NCBI GenBank assembly: GCA_047495785.1 | Contig: JBLDXI010000019.1 | Location: 930,001 to 994,000, forward strand | Length of the DNA: 64,000 nucleotides | Source of the DNA: Lepidodermella squamata | Lineage: Eukaryota; Animalia; Gastrotricha | Direction of reading: 5' to 3' | Part shown: positions 1-9,451 of the stretch, in pieces | Layout of the letters: every line of letters begins with the position of its first letter | Numbering within the stretch: position 1 is the first letter of the stretch | The notes under the pieces: model-generated | Told to the model about the DNA's origin: nothing | Databases searched by the model: none | The model's input: the letters and a program-made list of their open reading frames with translations, nothing else | Made by a program: the position numbers and the translations under genes

Positions 1-273
1 CTCTCTGTTTATCACTCTGGATAATAAATGGATTGTGTGAAATTTGTTGATCATTTCGATTGGCCAGGTCAACTGGGACAAGGGAGCAATGTGACAATCG
101 AGATGTAACTGAAGTCAACGAGGAGTTGTGATTACCCGTGACATCATGCTAAATGATGACAGTTGTGACCAGAGGATGAACACACTAACAAGAGTACAGG
201 AACAAATGCAGAATTCTTGGTTGGAAACTGAAGTCAGGAGTAAAACTAACACGAAAATTGGAAAAGCAATCAT
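1..273 (-). CDS. 5' part of a putative secreted orphan protein (exons 273-190 and 148-<1), running off the window edge
   Basis: ATG at 273 gives MIAFPIFVLVLLLTSVSNQEFCICSCTL (signal-peptide-like). A 41-nt GT..AG intron (189-149, phase 0) follows, and the frame stays open to position 1. Not in the ORF track. Confidence 0.4.
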
Positions 274-509
274 TGTTTCCGCTGGTTATTTGGGCTATCA
301 AGTTGATTTGAACAAAGAGTTCAGTTCAAGGCAATAAATTGAAGAAGCAATGAACATTTGGTTGCTGAGAATAAGCTAAGAATGATCTGCACCTCAGCCA
401 GCCCGTGCTGGTGAGAAATACCTGACAGTACGGAACAGTAATAAGACATGCCGAATTTAGGAGGTAAAATGAAACTGTTCAATGAATTTGAGATGAGCAA
501 AGAAGAGAT

Positions 510-602
510 GCTGAATGCTGAATGCTGAATTTAAGGAAGAATGAAGAAATGCTGAATGCTGATTTCGCTGAATTTAGGATGTGCGACAATGCTGACTGCT
601 GA
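510..602. repeat. Degenerate GCTGAAT heptamer tandem repeat
   Basis: gctgaatgctgaatgctgaat at 510-530, with further degenerate copies to about 600. Confidence 0.7.
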
Positions 603-771
603 TCCTGATTCGTGAATGTGAAAAAGTCACTTGGATTGATTTGATTGATGATCACGAGTCGTGGAAATATTGATCGATTTAAGAATCAGGCATTATATCC
701 GATCTCTTCATTCAATCGACCGCATGTAGATATCTTATTTATTTATTTATTTATTTATATTTATTTTCTCA

Positions 772-2101
772 ATGGCAATGCTCGCAACGCCCGTCGTTAG
801 CGACTTCTTGACGGCAGAAGCTCGGCAAGCCGGCGCAACAACGACACTTGCTGAGCTGAATTATGGGCCTTCAGACACGCAAACGCTCTACCTTCGCATC
901 CGTCGGCTATCTGATTGCCGCACCGTCGCCAGACCGAACCCTCACACGCATGTCAGCAATTTAGTGGTGTGCGAGAGTCCTCGCTACATCAAAGGCGTCG
1001 TCATCATGGAGCGGTGGATCCACGCCAACGACCGGCTTCATGCTGATATGAAACTTGGCTCCTTTCTCACCATTCGCCACCTTGAGTTCCAGCTGGGAAT
1101 TGAGAATCACAATTACAGCTTGGTGGAGCACATGACCGACCTCGTCAGCCCGACCATGGAGCGCGGCCAAATCTCGAATTCGGCCGAATGGCCATGCCTC
1201 ATTGTGCGACACCCGGCTTCAATTACCTTGGGCGCTGAAGCAGCGTCCATGCTGGAGTTATCAGTTATTGAAAACGCTCGCTACAGTGATGAGTTTGATT
1301 TCCGGCCTCGGAACAGCGCAACCGAGCGCGAGATCAACGTGAATATTGTCGGCCAAATTTTCCATGAGACGTAGCTACGTCTCATGAAATTTTCGGCTTC
1401 ACGGACAAGGGCGCACGACCTGTCTACCAGGGCAACAGGAAAGTAGACGTTGAGCTGTGCATCGTCGAAATCCGGAACCTGAGCAATGACATGCTGTGCT
1501 AGTTATTTCAATTGAGCTCTCCAAATATTTATAAACTATGTTTTCCCATATTTCTTGTACAGCGATTTCGCTGTGGGGCCGTGCTGAGAAGCAGGCTATG
1601 CTGAAGGCCATGTCCGAGATGAACCAGGAAAAGCTCGATGGAGGCGACAATTTTCAGCCCTGGTGGCTTTATTTGCTGGAAGCAGGGGTCTCTGATAATG
1701 GCGTTGTTGGCACCTGTGCCAGGACTGTCATTTCCTTTGACAGGGTGCTGCGCTACGATCTGATTGCTAGAGGTGGCGACAATTTTGAAATTCGTCGCCC
1801 TCATACCGATGCTAGCTTGTTAAAATTTCGCCGTCGGCAGCAAATGAATCTGCAATTTCGTTCAGCTCGGCTGCCACAGCTGCCTGCTAGTATTGGCGAG
1901 CCACCGGCGAAAAAGCCACAGAACCCCACCTTAACTGACGCGCCTTCAGTCGAGTTTGGCGTCCAGGAACCTCAGCCAAACATGTTAAGCGATTTCCTCT
2001 CAAAAATCGAGTTTGATTCTCGTTTCGGCGATCTGCGGCGAGATGATAAAAGTGGTCTTATCTTCAGCCGGGTATCCAAATCTGCTATTCAACTGGTTTA
2101 G
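772..2101 (+). pseudogene. RPA70-like tandem OB-fold (ssDNA-binding) gene, disrupted by a palindromic insertion
   Basis: TTLAELN..TLYLRIRRLSDCRTV..NLVVCES..IKGVV..DRLHADMKLGSFLTIRH follows the RPA1 DBD-A pattern. Removing the 32-bp insertion at 1363-1394 lets the frame continue VNIVGQIFGFTDKG..VELCIVEIRNLSNDML; a short intron then leads to ISLWG..LYLLEAGVSDNG, the DBD-B pattern. The intron donor near 1496 is uncertain. Confidence 0.55.
1355..1394. mobile_element. Minimal hAT-like insertion: 24-bp perfect palindrome flanked by an 8-bp TSD
   Basis: AAATTTTC(1355-1362) CATGAGACGTAG|CTACGTCTCATG(1363-1386) AAATTTTC(1387-1394). An 8-bp TSD with CA..TG ends is typical of hAT elements. Confidence 0.8.
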
Positions 2102-3149
2102 TTATCCTTATTATTCATTTTTTTTTATCTAGGCCCCTATCGTCAGAGCTTTTTTGAGCCTGCAATACGCCAAAGTGCCACTGCCTCTATCTCCCGAAAT
2201 TGGGGATTCAAGGCCTTCACACCAGTAGATTATCACGATGGCGCCACGCATATGTTCAGAGAAATCAGATCTGCCTCCATTCGCGCCAAATTTCAGGATT
2301 GTCGCCTCGAAGCTTGACATTGATACCGTGAGATTTCAGCATTCATTGTTTTTAAAATTAAGTTTTGCATTTTATATTTTGCACAATGAGAAATTCCTGA
2401 AATCTCTCAAGCTGAATGATAAGTAGTGGTGAAATGCTACGTAAGTTTTTGAGTTTCGATATAATTGATTGAAATCGAAAATTTCATTCTGTTTAGGCTA
2501 CGATCGACGATCGATACTGCCGATACGTGACATCTCCTTTCTTTCCACATATTTCTTCATCTCTTCCAAATACTTAATTTATTGTGCCTACGTCTTCTCG
2601 CGCGCCCTTCATTCTTCCTTCGGACTTATTGTTTTTTTTACCTTCAAATGTGCTGTTGCAGTATATACCTATCTGCTGGCGTGACATTATTTATTATATA
2701 CACGCGGTCAATATTTTCCTACCAAAGTCAAATATATACATCTAAAAATACTTCTGTTCTGTTCTGTTGCAATTTGATATTTTATGTGCCACCAAAATCT
2801 CATGCTTACTCACTCGCGCCTCCTTCGATATTTTATAACATTTGAGAGGGCAAAAAAATTGGAAAATGTGCGTCTGGAAAATATTATTTCGCCATGAAAA
2901 TGCTCGACTTGTTTTCTTTGTTGTTAAAATATTATAATAGTATATGCCTCGCTCTTGTATTATAGTCTATGAAACTTTCGTTTGTTGTTGTTATGGAAAA
3001 ATAAATTGAATTTTCATGCAAGAGTTTTCGGGCAACGCATGAAGTTTTTATTTCGATTTTTTCAAATTTTAGTTGGTTAAATATCGCAAAATTTTGAATC
3101 GAATTCGTTCTCATGAGAATCGGCTTTCCGTCATCTGATCTATATAATA

Positions 3150-5410
3150 ATGAGCGGCAGGGACTACAAATGCGGTCTAGATCCGGCGGCGTTGGCGTTT
3201 TTCAAGGGTAAAAATGAGCATAAAGTTATTTTTTTGCTGCAAAATTAAGGATGATGTCAATTTTACAGGCAAGGAGAAAAATAACTACGTGGCGAAAGTT
3301 GACACGGCAGCAAGCAATTTTTTCAAGAGTAAATTTAGATATACAACTTATGAACCGGAATATTCAAGCTTTCTTTTATATGATGGAAATAGGTCGTGAA
3401 AAATCTTCAAATGCCTCGGCTGTACCGACAACAGGGCCGACAGCTGCTGTTGCGTCTAGCTCGTCACCTTCAGTTGGAACGTCGTCGTCGTCGGCGGCGG
3501 CTTCACCTGCAATCACTCAAGTCACCGAAGTGAAATGGAACAATGCTACATTTTTTGTTGTTGCGGTGAAGGGGGTGCGTTCTGATTGGGAAATTGAAGG
3601 CCTTCGCTCAGTCATACCTGGAAACTCGCAGTTAGAATTCGCAGCTAGTACAAGACTAGATGTCGACTACCGCGTTAGCGTCGTAGTCGAAAGTGAAATC
3701 GACGCGGCTTCATTTCAGTCCCTCGGCTTCGTTACTCTGCCGAATACGAAGAGGGTGAGCCTGGCTCAGATGGTTCCTTTTCGATCGAAAGAGCCTGGCG
3801 AGTTCAAAGTTTTCACTCAAAGTGATATTGCTGCCTGCCACACTGAAGATGCCTATGAAAACCTGCTTCCTCTGCGGGATTTATCAAGTTTAGCAGTTGC
3901 TAATAAAGTCATTGCAACATCGCCAGGGCTAACTAAGGCCAATGCAGATTCTGAGCGGTTAGTCTCTATGACCAACGTTGAGCTGAGGACAACACAAGAT
4001 GAAATTCTGGCTTCTCTGGAGAGGGTTGGTTGGCAACAGCCAATTATCAACATTGGTTTCGCGCAAACATCGGCATCTACGCGGAAAGTAGCCATACTTG
4101 AATTTGAATCTTCTTCAAAAGCTGCGGAGTTTGTCAGTAAGGTGGGCCACACGTTTAATCTCGAAGGACAAGATGTAGTAATAGATCGAATTGGAGCGAG
4201 CAAAATGCTGAATTTACAGCGAAATGAAATCGTTCGCGCCGATATTATCGATTTTCGTATTTGCTTCGTCGTGAAGATTCCCATGGGCGTCACGTTAGCC
4301 GATTTGAAAGCAGCTTACCCCGGGCCAACAATTTATTTGGAAACCTTTCATGGTGCTGATCGGCAAATGGCCGTCCTCGAATTCGCCACTGAAGCGCATC
4401 GTTCGGAATTTTTGAAACGTACGATTGTAACAATCGGTGATTTGGTAATACCCGAAAAATTCGCCCCTTCTTTTACGTCAAACTCCTCGAATTCCCCGGA
4501 TAAATTCTTCATCACGAGACCTAGTGCACCTATATGGCGCTGTTCACCGTCTGATCCCGCTTACTATGCTGCCAGCTTGGTCAATCTATGCTACATGAAA
4601 GCCTTTCTATCATGTTTTCGCTCGGATCTGGCCAATGCCTCAGACCACTCGATCGCTGGATTTCTCGACGAAAGTTTTAGCGGAGATTTCGCCGTTGACA
4701 TCGAGCCTCTCCTCAAGGATGAATTCGGTGAAAAGCGTGCCAAGTCGGTCTTATCGTTATTCGGGCAATGTCGCACACGTCGCCGCAGCTCGGCTATTAT
4801 GCGAAATAGCTACTATTGCTATTATAATAACGACGTAATGTGCCTCCGCCAAATAACCGGGCGCATTCCTGCCCTGCATGATATGAAGCAGACGTTGCTG
4901 AGCTTGTCCGATCGTGCGGTTGACGACTCGACGTTTTTCAAACGGTTTTTCCAAGCGATCGCAAGTTCCACGAGAAAGCCCGAATTCAAGAACTTTTTCA
5001 CGAAAACGAATTTGTCTTATTTTTCGCCGCGCTGTCATCGCTGCCCCCTAGTCAATCGAAATTTTTGCTTCATAATTTCCGGTCGCTTGACGAACCTCGG
5101 CCTTTTGGATGAACATTGTGTCGTCAATGTTCTGTACTATATCAACGATTTGAATGGGTCGCTGATGATTTACGTCGGAACGACGATTCACCCTCTTGTT
5201 CGCATGCGAAACCACGTACTAGCGATAAACCAATGTGATGTGCATTCATCAGTCGGCTGCTTTTTCACTCGTCGTCACACCCTACATTCGGCTATGCCGA
5301 TAAAATTCCACATTTTGGCCGTGGTTCCTAATTCATTCAACGCGGAACAAAGTTTAATTGACGCCACGTGGTCTTATATTTGCAACCTTGCTAGAGATTC
5401 TCGACGCTAG
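3150..5410 (+). CDS. Multi-RRM protein with C-terminal GIY-YIG endonuclease (exons 3150-3207, 3269-3328, 3393-5410)
   Basis: Two phase-1 GT-AG introns join the ATG at 3150 to the 719-aa ORF. RRM-like segments: LVSMTNVELRTTQDEI..VAILEFES and CFVVKIPMGVTLADLKAAY..MAVLEFAT. The C-terminus CHRC..HCVVNVLYYI..IYVGTT..LVRMRNH..AEQSLI..CN matches GIY-YIG motifs. Confidence 0.7.
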
Positions 5411-6315
5411 ATTTTTGCTGGAGATTTGCTTTTAAGTGCTGCAAAAGCAGCAGCGTCATCATCACCTGCCGTACTACTACTATGATAATCTAATATGTTT
5501 TTTCCACGAAAAAATTCGGCACGATTCGGTTTATATTGCTGCTGTGATGTTTTTCTGTGAAGTGCTCTTTCCCTATATATTGCTCACTGTCGCTGCTTCT
5601 CATTTTGATCGCACACTTATTATTATTTCGCTCATTATTTATCGTATTCTCTTAATTTTAAAGATGTCTGGACAGCAAAGCGCATTCTGTCAATTATACG
5701 GAATTTTTGTATAAGTAGCCATCTCAGATACGATACCCGGTTCGATTTATCTATTATACCCGACTTTTGTTGCTCTTATACTACTACACAAATATTTTGA
5801 ATTTTGTATTGTCCGCATTTGTTGTAATTACTTATGTCATATTCGCGTTTTTATGATATAATTTCAGTCTTATTTATTTGTTGGCCTCGATTCTACACTG
5901 CTTGGCATTATTTTCACCCGATCAACCCGGTCGGATTCGCCAAAAATTAGCGTAAAAATCGCATTTGTGTACATACCAACAACAACAACTGTTTACTTTC
6001 TTGGCAAAAATAACAAATTTGACTACCTATATTTATTTGTTGCCAGCTTACACTCTCATTCTGAAAATTTGATTTTATTTCATCGTCGAGCATTTATTGC
6101 GACTATATATAATAGAAAAAAATGATAATAAATTTCAAACGATGAGGAATTATTTGCGTGTACGTTTTTTTCGGCGAGAAATTAGGCAACAATTGAAAAG
6201 CAGGCTTTCATTCACAAAATAAGGAATATGTACAACAATGCCGAAGAATCGAATGTTCGAGATCAAGAGGTGTTCTCTTACAGCAGCAGCATCATCTTAT
6301 AAAGCATCGCTGCAT

Positions 6316-6730
6316 ATACCGTACTGCGCCAGAAATGTTGGGCCTGTCCTTTATTTTTGCAAAACAAGTCGAAACCCCGTCTTATATGTGAGACCGCCCT
6401 TTATTTGAGGCCTGACCTTAATCGAACCATTCTCAGCTCATCACGCGGTACAACGCATCCAGTCGCCTCTGAATCGACCTCTAAATAGATCGGCATATGC
6501 TCAGTTTTTTAACCCAAGGAGAACGCGATGATGATGATGATGATGACGACGTAATATATAATTCGAATTCCGAATTCCTTTAAACTATTTCGAAAGTTAT
6601 CAAAATTTATCATAAAATGATGATACACGCGTGGGCGACCTGATCATGATTTGAGGCCTGACCCTTATTACTATTTTGAATGACCATTGGGCCCCGTCTT
6701 ATATTTAAGGCCGACTTTTATACGAGGCTG
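6316..6730. repeat. Dispersed short direct repeats resembling a Tc2/pogo-like MITE remnant
   Basis: ccccgtcttatat at 6375 and 6692; tttgaggcctgacc at 6404 and 6650; TA-CCGTA at about 6317. Confidence 0.35.
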
Positions 6731-7071
6731 ACTAACTTTGTCGGACATTGGAATGGCGCGACTGCTGACTGATATCACGCTCCGCAGCTTCCATTACACC
6801 ACCGTGCACGAGGTACTAATATCAACCCCATCAGATATAGGTCGTAAATCTCTTTTGGATCATCGCTAGGTTTTCAGCCATGACTTGTGGGTCTAGCACC
6901 CTTTGTTTACAGTAGTAAATAGAAAAACTTCTCAGCTTTCAGCATTCATATTACATGTGAAATATGAATCAGCCAACCCAAACTGTTTTTTTTTCGCTTT
7001 TAAATCCTTGAAATATTACGGTTTCTTTTACGATAGAACAATAGTTCTTAATTTCTTAGGATAATGCTGTC

Positions 7072-7563
7072 ATGATTCATAACTTTCTAACGTTTTTCCT
7101 CGCCTCAATCGCCTTGCATTTGGGGTATGTGATCGGGTCCTCGAAATGGGTCGATTTTACTGAAAGCGAAGACCCGCCAGAAATTCGAGGCGAAAAGGCT
7201 AAAATGCTCTACGCCAAAATGTCGCCTGAACAACGCTACGTCATCGAGGCGGTAGCAACTGTTCTCGAGAGCGAGTACGTCAAAAAATATGCCGCTCTGG
7301 CTAGGCGAACGTCGAATGAATTGAACCAAAGGACGGAGGAACTAGCGGAATTATCGTCGAAAATCACTGAAATGGTGCAGATCACTCATCAACGCAACTG
7401 GACTAGTCTGATGGCCGAAGCGACGCTATCGTGTTTAGCCTGTGCTTTACCTCTACTGCTGATTTACATTCTTAGAATGGTGATGAATCAGGAAAAAATG
7501 ATTGCGGAAGCTATCCGGCTGCAAAACCAGCAAAATGTTATTTTCGGTCGGGCGCCACTGTGA
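7072..7563 (+). CDS. Orphan signal-peptide/coiled-coil/TM protein (paralogue A)
   Basis: 163-aa ORF with hydrophobic N-terminus and C-terminal TM segment; AATAAA just after the stop; shares motifs with 8095-8601. Confidence 0.65.
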   Translation: MIHNFLTFFLASIALHLGYVIGSSKWVDFTESEDPPEIRGEKAKMLYAKMSPEQRYVIEAVATVLESEYVKKYAALARRTSNELNQRTEELAELSSKITEMVQITHQRNWTSLMAEATLSCLACALPLLLIYILRMVMNQEKMIAEAIRLQNQQNVIFGRAPL

Positions 7564-8094
7564 AATTTTATGGCAATAAAGTGATGAAACTTGCAAAGCT
7601 GTTGTTTATTATTTTTCAAAGCCTTTCGAGCGAAAAGCCACATCGAGTCAAAGTTCATGCTGCGTCTCTTGTTTGTTGAAAAAGATGAGTATAAAACTGT
7701 AATTGGGCAATTAACAACTGCCAGTATTCGCCATTAGTCTCCATCTATCCCTTGATGATGCTGACGTGGCAATTTTTAAACATCAATGTAAACACATAGA
7801 ATAGAAGATTCGCAGGCAAAAAATGAGCGTATAATGAAAACCATACATCTATACAAAAGACTATGTACTAAAAGAGAGAGAGAAAGAGAGAGGCGGAGGG
7901 AGGGGGCGCTTTTTATTTATAACAAAAAAACCCCACCGCATTTTTTCTATTTATTATCATAAATCATTCCAGTGTTTTTGTGCCTTTATTGTATAAATAA
8001 CGCGCGGCATAGAACTTTGGACCCGGCATATACAGCAGCAGCAGCACAATACGGGTAACAATAGCAGTTTTCTCGCAATCAACCAGACAAAACG

Positions 8095-8601
8095 ATGTTG
8101 CATCTGAACTCGCCATTCGTTATTAAATTGCGGCAAATCACGTCGTGCTGCCTGTTGTTCGTGCTTTATTTCAGCCGCGGCGTTGTCAGCTTCGATGTCG
8201 AGGACGAAATTTACCTGCGAAACCAGTTGGCCATGCTGACCGAGGAGCAGCATGAAGCCTTGGAGAAGATAATCGACGTTATTCGAAGCGAGTATTCTAA
8301 AAAATGTACGAATGTGATGTACGACGCGTTCTTCTCGCCGGCTGATACTGATAGTTATTACGAACGAATCGAAGGCCCGTCTCTGCTGCCGCCGGCTCCG
8401 CGCATCGAATCGTCATCGACACGGTATGCTAATTCAAACATGGCCGAAGCGCCGGCGAGATTCTGCCCGCCTTCTCCGCCTTGCAAATGCGAAAGGTGTC
8501 TCTCGACTATGGAAGTATTTTTGACGAGTCTTGCCGCAACTTCGCTCGTACTCGCCGCCTGGCACCTTCGGACATCAGTATTTCAGCTTATCAAAAACTG
8601 A
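8095..8601 (+). CDS. Orphan signal-peptide/TM protein (paralogue B)
   Basis: 168-aa ORF; AMLTEEQHEALEKIIDVIRSEYSKK aligns with AKMSPEQRYVIEAVATVLESEYVKK of paralogue A; C-terminal hydrophobic segment. Confidence 0.65.
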   Translation: MLHLNSPFVIKLRQITSCCLLFVLYFSRGVVSFDVEDEIYLRNQLAMLTEEQHEALEKIIDVIRSEYSKKCTNVMYDAFFSPADTDSYYERIEGPSLLPPAPRIESSSTRYANSNMAEAPARFCPPSPPCKCERCLSTMEVFLTSLAATSLVLAAWHLRTSVFQLIKN

Positions 8602-9451
8602 CTCATGTAGCAGTGTTTTACGTCAAATGCCAATCTTTTCACCAAAATTCAGTTCTTTCCTGATAGTAAAAACAGATTTTTTGTCGTGTCATGAATTTTT
8701 TCGTTGAATTGAGTATGAGCGCCAAAATTCGAGCTTAATCCAGCTCAAAAAATGAACCCTTTATGGGTATCATTTCTGAAAGAATTACTGAATTATTTTG
8801 CAGTATTACATAAGTATACGTTACCTGAAGTTCACATGTAGATCCAATGCAAGCTCCATGCTTATATTTTACTATTTCTATCATGTCAGATGGCTTGTAA
8901 AGAACTATCAGAGGCAATCACACAGGAGCACAGGAGCACATCCAGGAGCAGAAGCCAGGAGCCAGGAGCACATCGAGGTTCATCTATACTCCAACGAGAA
9001 GATTTCCAGTATCGATATGAATTTCCAGCATTGGGTATGCAGTCTGAGGAGCAAACATTGAAGATTTAAATAAAATTTATTAAATTAAAATTGGATATAG
9101 AAGGGTATCGGGTTGCTAAGAAAAAAATCAAGGGAAAATGCGCGAACAATTTGAAACTATTAAAAATGAAAGTGTGTCCCAAATGTCCCAATTTCCAGTC
9201 CCGAAATGTCCCGTTAAAAGAAAATGTTTTCGGTGAAAGGAAAATTGCCTAATTTGGAGGAACCAATCCAGATTTACTTTTAGTGTAAAAAAGTAACAAA
9301 AGTCCAGATGTACCAGCGGAACATTTACTGTACAATCGCAAAAAACGGTGTCAGAAAGAAATGGGTTTAAAAAATAAGTTTAAATGTTTAGCTATATATT
9401 AGAGGCTCGTGAATTTTTGGTTTTCATTGTTATCGTCAGATCTTTAGATTC

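Follow-up and report, generated by a model that had tools for sequence, protein, structure and literature searches.

The stretch analysed here (the window) comprises 64,000 nucleotides of the genome of the gastrotrich Lepidodermella squamata (assembly GCA_047495785.1, contig JBLDXI010000019.1, positions 930,001 to 994,000 of the forward strand). Near its start, in coordinates that count from the first letter of the window, the plus strand carries two co-oriented genes: an orphan gene at 772–2101, which maybe extends to about 2312, and downstream of it a single uninterrupted frame of 719 codons (3251–5410) taken from a list of open reading frames (ORFs). The product of this second frame is an orphan protein of approximately 700 residues that comprises RRM folds, a helical middle region and a divergent GIY-YIG domain. 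We refer to the corresponding gene as the nuclease gene, after the predicted activity of that domain, and to its upstream neighbour as the partner gene. Together the two form a co-oriented cassette, the nuclease gene coming second, of which this genome holds further open and decayed copies. The exons, domains and pieces of these two genes given below lie on the plus strand.

Nearly the whole nuclease protein is encoded by the main exon of our gene model (3393–5410; 671 codons plus a stop), and the paralogues align over its full length. Two small candidate exons can be read 5′ of it: the first (3150–3207) would open with the ATG at 3150 and end at a GT donor at 3208, and the second (3269–3328) would lie between an AG acceptor (3267–3268) and a GT donor (3329). 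By frame arithmetic, their 58 + 60 = 118 nt lead into the third exon in the frame of the long ORF, and the spliced model would yield about 711 residues. A first-pass annotation of the window, made from the letters alone, had described an intact spliced gene. The open 719-codon frame, the GT..AG borders and the preserved frame are consistent with this, but the ATG at 3150 is ACG in the public DNA run X1, and an unspliced start at a pair of ATG codons (3380–3385) is, as far as the sequence allows a judgement, equally possible. Run X1 is genomic and the sole public run containing the stretch, and its contigs span the proposed introns without a break. Homology to a decayed copy on contig C33 extends from 3152 onward, candidate introns included (C-numbers denote contigs of the same L. 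squamata genome; C18a and C18b are two copies on C18). Protein searches were run with the main exon or the long ORF, one exon at a time.

The C terminus of the protein carries the divergent GIY-YIG domain (5111–5395). The motif string quoted in the first-pass annotation, from a CxxC through NVLYYI and IYVGTT to the R, H, E and N positions, is found at 5033–5395 on the plus strand: the CxxC (CHRC) at 5033–5044, a His-Cys pair at 5114–5119, the first Tyr in VLYYIN (5129–5146), the Tyr-x-Gly in IYVGTT (5168–5185), the Arg and His in LVRMRNHV (5195–5218), the Glu in NAEQSLID (5339–5362) and the Asn in YICNLAR (5375–5395). Proteins belonging to the GIY-YIG superfamily are recognized by GIY and YIG elements 10–11 residues apart, followed by Arg, His (in many families), Glu and Asn; the window's domain has this residue set of PF01541, and its register is that of the domains of Penelope-like elements (PLEs) and of SLX1. 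In an alignment of eight C-terminal domains of the family, 23–37% identical to the window's, the Arg, His, Glu and Asn are invariant, together with one Pro and one Ile, and the GIY-type Tyr and the Y-x-G are present in every member whose sequence covers those motifs. The Tyr, Tyr, Arg, Glu and Asn that had been named as the likely catalytic residues are therefore conserved across eight family members, and the His as well. The CxxC is retained solely in the window and C18 lineages.

Profile comparisons agree with this assignment. GIY-YIG is the sole Pfam match of the window protein (PF01541, E 0.017, 15.8 bits, ORF residues 627–699; under the curated cut-off of 22.6 bits), and the same family is matched by the members on C9 (15.9 bits, E about 0.016, in the same register as the window) and C17 (13.3 bits). 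The strongest of the tests, an hhalign alignment of the family profile to five PLE nuclease domains of the same genome, gave a probability of 54–61% and a P of about 1e-4 over 83–86 columns, with the motifs in register. The score of 30.4 compares with a mean of 9.9 and a maximum of 17.0 in 150 column shuffles and with 10.7 for the reversed profile; as a calibration, the PLE nucleases score 31.9 against the SLX1/helicase-linked type. Only 17–19 columns of the window family align to SLX1 and the helicase-linked type. Among PDB sequences, the best matches of the family profile are two SLX1 nuclease domains in the Y...YxGxT...R...H register, at non-significant E values of 0.48 and 0.78, and an ESM Atlas feature search with the C-terminal 200 residues placed the nearest GIY-YIG clusters at 0.93–0.94. 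Both domain models show a beta-beta-alpha-alpha-beta-alpha order at low confidence (predicted local distance difference test, pLDDT, about 30–50), and I-TevI and UvrC are among the weak Foldseek rows obtained with such a low-confidence model (E 2–4). At the level of sequence, the identification of the C terminus as a divergent GIY-YIG nuclease domain with all catalytic residues kept is sound, and its activity is predicted. The genome also holds, at C29:3525501–3528710, an open frame in which a PIF1-like helicase is joined to an SLX1-like GIY-YIG domain, with close copies on C64, C60 and C24; profile comparison finds it unrelated to the RRM–GIY-YIG family.

Upstream of the nuclease domain, the protein contains RRM-like modules. 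A structure model built from four family sequences has a mean pLDDT of 44 overall and includes, at main-exon residues 189–265 and 289–351, two beta-alpha-beta-beta-alpha-beta units at a pLDDT of about 80. These correspond to module 2 (3956–4192), with an RNP2-like VSMTNV and an RNP1-like RKVAILEF, and module 3 (4259–4450), with CFVVKIP and RQMAVLEF, the latter module falling within the tandem-RRM Foldseek matches. Foldseek matched the model to tandem-RRM crystal structures, including PUF60/FIR, hnRNP A1 UP1 and HuR, at E about 1e-6. There were 178 PDB matches at E up to 0.001, and RRM-domain structures made up 49 of the top 50, mostly as tandem pairs; several of the top structural matches are RRMs with single-stranded DNA bound. 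Pfam RRM_1 (PF00076) matches module 2 of the window at E 0.034 (14.5 bits) and the same module of the C21 paralogue at E 4e-4 (20.6 and 20.5 bits; curated cut-off 20.7), and the family profile, when searched against 1.84 billion proteins, matched three in total, all of them multi-RRM proteins, at E 3e-5 to 9e-4. These comparisons and the models support RRM folds for modules 2 and 3. Module 1 (3524–3760), modelled with the same strand and helix order at a pLDDT of about 40 and without a Pfam match, is a possible third RRM fold, and the earlier count of two clear and one possible RRM proved fair.

What the modules bind is a separate matter. Canonical RRMs stack RNA bases against aromatic residues, found at positions 3 and 5 of RNP1 and position 2 of RNP2; RRM folds can also bind single-stranded DNA or proteins. 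In the window protein, the RNP1-like strands RKVAILEF and RQMAVLEF have aliphatic residues in place of the usual aromatics; at RNP2 position 2, module 3 has a Phe and module 2 no aromatic. Because the RNP1 strands are aliphatic and not aromatic, RNA binding by the RRM-like modules, and with it the RNA-tethered or RNA-guided nuclease proposed in the first-pass annotation, is something that we purely infer. Between the modules and the nuclease domain lies a middle region (4520–5030) that is predicted, at low confidence, to be all-helical; no Pfam family matched it, and it is marked by the family-conserved motifs PS..W, P..YAA, R..RR and C....D.M, taken from invariant alignment columns.

The first-pass annotation had called the domain a Penelope-type endonuclease that lacks a reverse transcriptase (RT). 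The second half of this description stands: a Pfam search of the window protein reaching to E 10 gave no RT family, and the YxDD motif is missing from the ORF and from every frame of window positions 1–9000. A decayed RT in the centre of the protein was considered and is ruled out, as there is neither an RT family nor a YxDD and the folds match RRMs. A search of the same 9,000 positions found no hammerhead ribozyme or other Rfam RNA. The Penelope label itself is partly right, being valid on the sequence for a nearest neighbour only. Among the GIY-YIG families compared, the best fit is to the PLE nucleases of this genome, but the markers of those nucleases are missing. The mark of PLE nucleases is the CCHH motif, in which a pair of Cys stands between GIY and YIG (Craig et al. 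2021, PMC8557442), and many of them (Neptune, Naiad, Nematis and Terminon types) also carry an upstream CX2-5CxxC linker (PMC8557442). The Hydra and Chlamys clades of PLEs have no CCHH either, yet both are RT-fused (PMC8557442). Within this genome, the CxxC between GIY and YIG is present in five of five PLE copies, as against no Cys between GIY and YIG in any member of the RRM–GIY-YIG alignment; upstream, the window and C18 lineages have the CxxC alone instead of the full linker, and C21, C17 and C9 lack even that.

This neighbourhood to PLEs allows a minor option, namely that the gene is a PLE-derived stand-alone nuclease acting in trans for putative endonuclease-free PLEs of this genome, with the RRM-like modules holding element RNA and the GIY-YIG domain nicking the target for target-primed reverse transcription. 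It corresponds to the proposal in the first-pass annotation of an RNA-tethered nuclease in the service of a mobile element. The fit of the nuclease domain to this genome's own PLE nucleases argues for it, as do the stand-alone GIY-YIG nucleases reported within giant Terminons of bdelloid rotifers (PMC6431247; PMC8557442). The Terminon nucleases, however, retain the CCHH as well as the CX2-5CxxC (PMC8557442), neither of which is conserved in the window family. A decayed PLE fragment comprising an RT end and a nuclease lies 2.7 kb downstream of the C9 family member on the same strand; apart from it, no PLE RT, hammerhead or PLE terminal repeat was found beside the cassettes examined, and the constant partner of the nuclease gene is an orphan gene and not an RT. 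We consider action in trans for PLEs improbable.

The partner gene is read in three pieces, 772–1362, 1395–1501 and 1563–2101. Its ORFs 772–1374 and 1538–2101 have homologues, 27–39% identical, that precede a nuclease gene in the same orientation at C18a, C18b and C21, and more sensitive searches added homologues at C17 and C59. The co-oriented pair is present in the window and at C18a, C18b, C21, C17, C59, C55 and C3, and in rearranged form at C19b; it thus recurs at nine or more loci. Remnants of both genes occur together on C55, on C3 and elsewhere on C19. Since the partner and nuclease genes recur together, the pair is the unit that is kept and copied, a context that the first-pass annotation had missed. 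None of eight aligned pieces of the partner gene matched a Pfam family at E up to 10, and searches yielded no PDB sequence match and no usable ESM Atlas match; an oligonucleotide-binding (OB) fold or RPA-like identity, which had been considered for it, is unsupported by all three resources. A complex prediction for the two cassette proteins scored 0.00, with the fold of the partner itself uncertain, and weighs neither way. In the spacer between the two genes, one contig of run X1 omits 276 bp (2696–2971) at about half the local depth, which is probably a heterozygous indel. Pfam and tblastn searches revealed no transposase, RT or Rep in or beside the cassettes examined, and a Helitron-like cargo is ruled out at the loci examined, where tblastn finds no helicase or Rep.

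Besides the window, open nuclease genes with a partner are found at C18a, C18b, C21 and C17 and are 22–31% identical across lineages; C9 holds a further open nuclease gene for which no partner was detected. Other contigs hold eight or more decayed copies, with fragments found on at least six contigs. C18a and C18b form a young pair that arose by tandem duplication, and both of their genes are under purifying selection: the ratio of nonsynonymous to synonymous divergence (dN/dS) is 0.12 for the nuclease gene, at a synonymous divergence (dS) of 0.05, and 0.15–0.32 for the partner gene, at a dS of 0.11–0.38. The unequal dS of the two genes suggests gene conversion over the nuclease gene. Fragments of the window's own subfamily, on C55, C42, C33, C3 and at C19:1477k, have 70–91% DNA identity and contain stops and deletions in each case; several retain pieces of both genes, and their ends fall at differing points. 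The copy at C19:1477k (C19:1475752–1479630) is a non-collinear mosaic, with a nuclease-gene piece of about 1 kb that is 91% identical to the window set between partner pieces at 67–73%, which suggests ectopic repair or conversion between cassettes. Read depth in the DNA run is raised over 3963–5378, as expected for extra copies.

The copy number and shared flanks of the gene had been proposed as a check. The census supplies the copies, at nine or more loci, but comparison of the copies (the right flanks of four being excluded) revealed neither termini in common nor target-site duplications, and neither empty sites nor a presence/absence polymorphism of the cassette. Outside this genome, neither the whole protein nor residues 520–719 nor the C-terminal alignment found a relative among 5.8 billion proteins, and metagenome contigs and viral contigs likewise gave none. 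The possibility raised earlier that the gene is an orthologue of a described family is answered by these searches and by that of the 1.84 billion proteins, in which no such family was found.

The copy in the window is itself in a doubtful state. Its partner gene is broken by a 32-nt insertion (1363–1394), which consists of a 24-bp perfect palindrome (1363–1386; CATGAGACGTAG with its reverse complement) and the second copy of the 8-bp direct repeat AAATTTTC, found at 1355–1362 and 1387–1394 on either side of the palindrome. With the insertion come a frameshift and a TAG in frame; the frame homologous to other copies picks up at 1395, and the same 32 nt are present in run X1. A 39-nt intron bridging the stop is ruled out by frame arithmetic. 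The palindrome has 19 sites in the genome, nine of them exact, against none for a reversed control. It has the look of the two ends, joined together, of a small cut-and-paste element that generates 8-bp duplications. Such an element may have been hAT-like and have lost its interior; alternatively, the palindrome may itself be a very small mobile sequence. Comparison of the assembly with X1 revealed five coding differences in the nuclease ORF, all five nonsynonymous (L136P, V146F, F177L, S573F and F591C), and one in the partner gene, likewise nonsynonymous. Because the partner gene is broken and the allelic changes are all nonsynonymous, the window copy is probably decaying and drifting.

A stronger form of this explanation holds that the window copy does nothing now and is a recently disabled member whose long ORF has simply yet to gain a stop. 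The interrupted partner gene fits this, as do the run of nonsynonymous differences in both genes and the ACG at the candidate start, and, at the dN/dS of 0.12 seen in the C18 pair, it would be very unlikely for all five changes to be nonsynonymous. Five differences are, however, a small sample, paralogous contigs could account for some of them, an alternative start exists within the long ORF, and a 2.2-kb open frame with all catalytic residues is not expected to survive long neutral decay. We regard complete loss of function as rather unlikely. The window copy is in any case not the best one for study; the C18 pair is under clear selection.

The remainder of the window holds ordinary host genes, for example OPA1, NOT3 and Dpy19. 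Upstream of the window lie a 447-bp perfect inverted repeat and, at a distance of about 3 kb from the cassette, a Ty3-like pol ORF. The Ty3-like pol ORF and the decayed PLE fragment on C9 are unrelated debris near cassettes. Downstream of the nuclease gene, the segment 5411–6258 was copied along with the gene in the decayed C33 copy (blastn), and part of it, 5685–6258, recurs on C3, C21 and C14 in a whole-genome DNA search. Over 5685–6300, the copies on C3 (4367924–4369588) and C21 (2595246–2595920) are 94–96% identical and continuous with copies of a 434-bp repeat, and each lies within 10–20 kb of another cassette copy; this nearness could be a link to the cassettes or merely reflect a shared repeat-rich compartment. 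The repeat itself, about 434 bp at 6314–6747, has sharp ends and more than 30 genome copies at 72–96% identity, and many loci retain only its first 110–130 bp and last 120 bp. Inside it are direct sub-repeats of 20 nt and 37 nt; Rfam has no match to it, and its appearance is that of a non-autonomous element family.

A 990-bp direct repeat of 90% identity, at window positions 6770–7719 and C19:918379–919366, brackets about 17 kb that include the Ty3-like pol ORF, the 447-bp inverted repeat and the cassette. Each repeat copy contains a 163-residue ORF (91% identical; 7072–7563 in the window) of coiled-coil and membrane-anchor character, and the ORF at 8095–8601 is a more distant paralogue of it. 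These membrane-protein ORFs, 7072–7563 and 8095–8601, are not supported as parts of the cassette, as they have no counterparts beside other cassettes.

The reading that we tentatively favour is that the cassette is a low-copy selfish DNA unit without an RT or transposase of its own. Under such a scheme the GIY-YIG domain would nick or cut DNA, and the RRM-like modules and the middle region would target the nuclease to its substrate, perhaps RNA, single-stranded DNA or some structured nucleic acid. The nuclease would act jointly with the partner protein, and the pair would afterwards be copied or scattered when the host repairs the break, much like free-standing homing-endonuclease genes. The evidence for dispersal that we count towards this reading consists of the decayed scattered copies, the raised read depth and the mobile-element debris around the cassettes, the 434-bp repeat family included. 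Also counted towards it are the identity of the protein, the recurrence of the co-oriented pair, the selection on the C18 pair, the decay of the window copy and the lack of relatives in the collections searched. The stronger proposal that the pair is a new kind of eukaryotic nuclear selfish element, a homing-type GIY-YIG cassette aimed by RRM folds, equipped with a dedicated partner and spread by break repair, strikes us as unlikely.

Several points weigh against a selfish unit. The copies compared had neither terminal repeats nor target-site duplications, empty sites or presence/absence polymorphism, which leaves movement of the cassette a proposal. If a tandem duplication on C18 had been followed by the ordinary birth and death of host-family genes in repeat-rich regions, the census would look the same, and the spliceosomal-type introns of the gene models and the purifying selection also fit host genes. 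The nuclease activity, the nucleic-acid binding by the RRMs and the contact between the two proteins are predicted or inferred only, and the structural models of the nuclease domain are of low confidence (pLDDT about 44).

A close second, which we consider possible, is a lineage-specific host gene family that would act, for example, in DNA repair, on structured nucleic acids or in defence against mobile elements or viruses, and that would have expanded by tandem and segmental duplication while losing copies by ordinary decay. Purifying selection on both genes of the C18 pair, the origin of that pair by tandem duplication and the introns in the gene models would all be at home in such a family, as would the ordinary host genes that fill the remainder of the window and the lack of termini, target-site duplications, RT or transposase at the cassettes examined. 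Less easily explained by a host family are the lack of an orthologue beyond this genome in any collection searched, the decayed fragments on at least six contigs, some with both genes, the extreme divergence of the open copies (22–31% identity) and their repeat-rich surroundings. If the cassette is a host system, it would represent a lineage-restricted pair of a nuclease and its partner, with RNA or single-stranded DNA as the substrate.

We return to the selfish unit as the favoured reading and compare the family with known systems. GIY-YIG nucleases are single-domain cutters that borrow other modules for substrate finding, and their eukaryotic occurrences are SLX1, ANKLE1, PLEs and a few giant transposons. 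In the literature searched, no description was found of a protein combining an RRM array with a GIY-YIG domain. With SLX1, and with the SLX1-like tail of this genome's Helitron-like transposases, the window family has the GIY-YIG core in common; the two types differ in that the alignment covers merely the 17–19 columns given above, in that no Rep or helicase was found near the cassettes examined, and in that the window family keeps the C-terminal Asn, unlike SLX1-type domains, which are without it (PMC1564403).

The likeness to the PLE endonuclease (NCBI cd10442) is closer. In both, the domain is C-terminal in a large protein, with GIY and YIG followed, at matching order and spacing, by Arg, His, Glu and Asn, and this is the best profile match among the compared families (30.4 over 83 columns, as against 31.9 for two bona fide families). 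The window family differs from it in having no CCHH, no conserved CX2-5CxxC, no upstream RT, no hammerhead and no PLE-type terminal repeats. If the relationship is true, a PLE-like domain without Zn-finger motifs and without an RT would bear on the origin of the PLE nuclease. Terminons, the giant Athena-type PLEs of bdelloid rotifers, are described as containing stand-alone GIY-YIG-like nucleases (PMC6431247, PMC8557442). Compared by description only, they resemble the window family in that a PLE-nuclease-related GIY-YIG domain is encoded apart from the RT in a small invertebrate genome. By the same descriptions, the Terminon nucleases have both Zn-finger-like motifs and reside inside RT-carrying telomeric elements, whereas in the window family both motifs are missing, the loci are internal and gene-bearing, and the partner is an orphan gene.

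In architecture and in the proposed mode of spread, there are parallels to I-TevI and the Seg and Mob proteins of phage T4, which likewise combine a monomeric GIY-YIG catalytic domain, a linker and separate nucleic-acid-binding modules, and to the first of which the domain model has its weak structural match. Homing-endonuclease genes of this kind (I-TevI, Seg, Mob) spread selfishly through host repair of the break that they make themselves, with no polymerase or transposase. The known GIY-YIG homing genes occur in phages, organelles and introns and bind DNA by NUMOD or helix-turn-helix modules (PMC1564403). The window gene, by comparison, is nuclear, belongs to an animal, is probably spliced, and has RRM-like modules and a constant partner; homing is ascribed to it only by analogy. 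If the cassette does move via its own breaks, it would be to the animal nucleus what free-standing homing-endonuclease genes are to phages and organelles.

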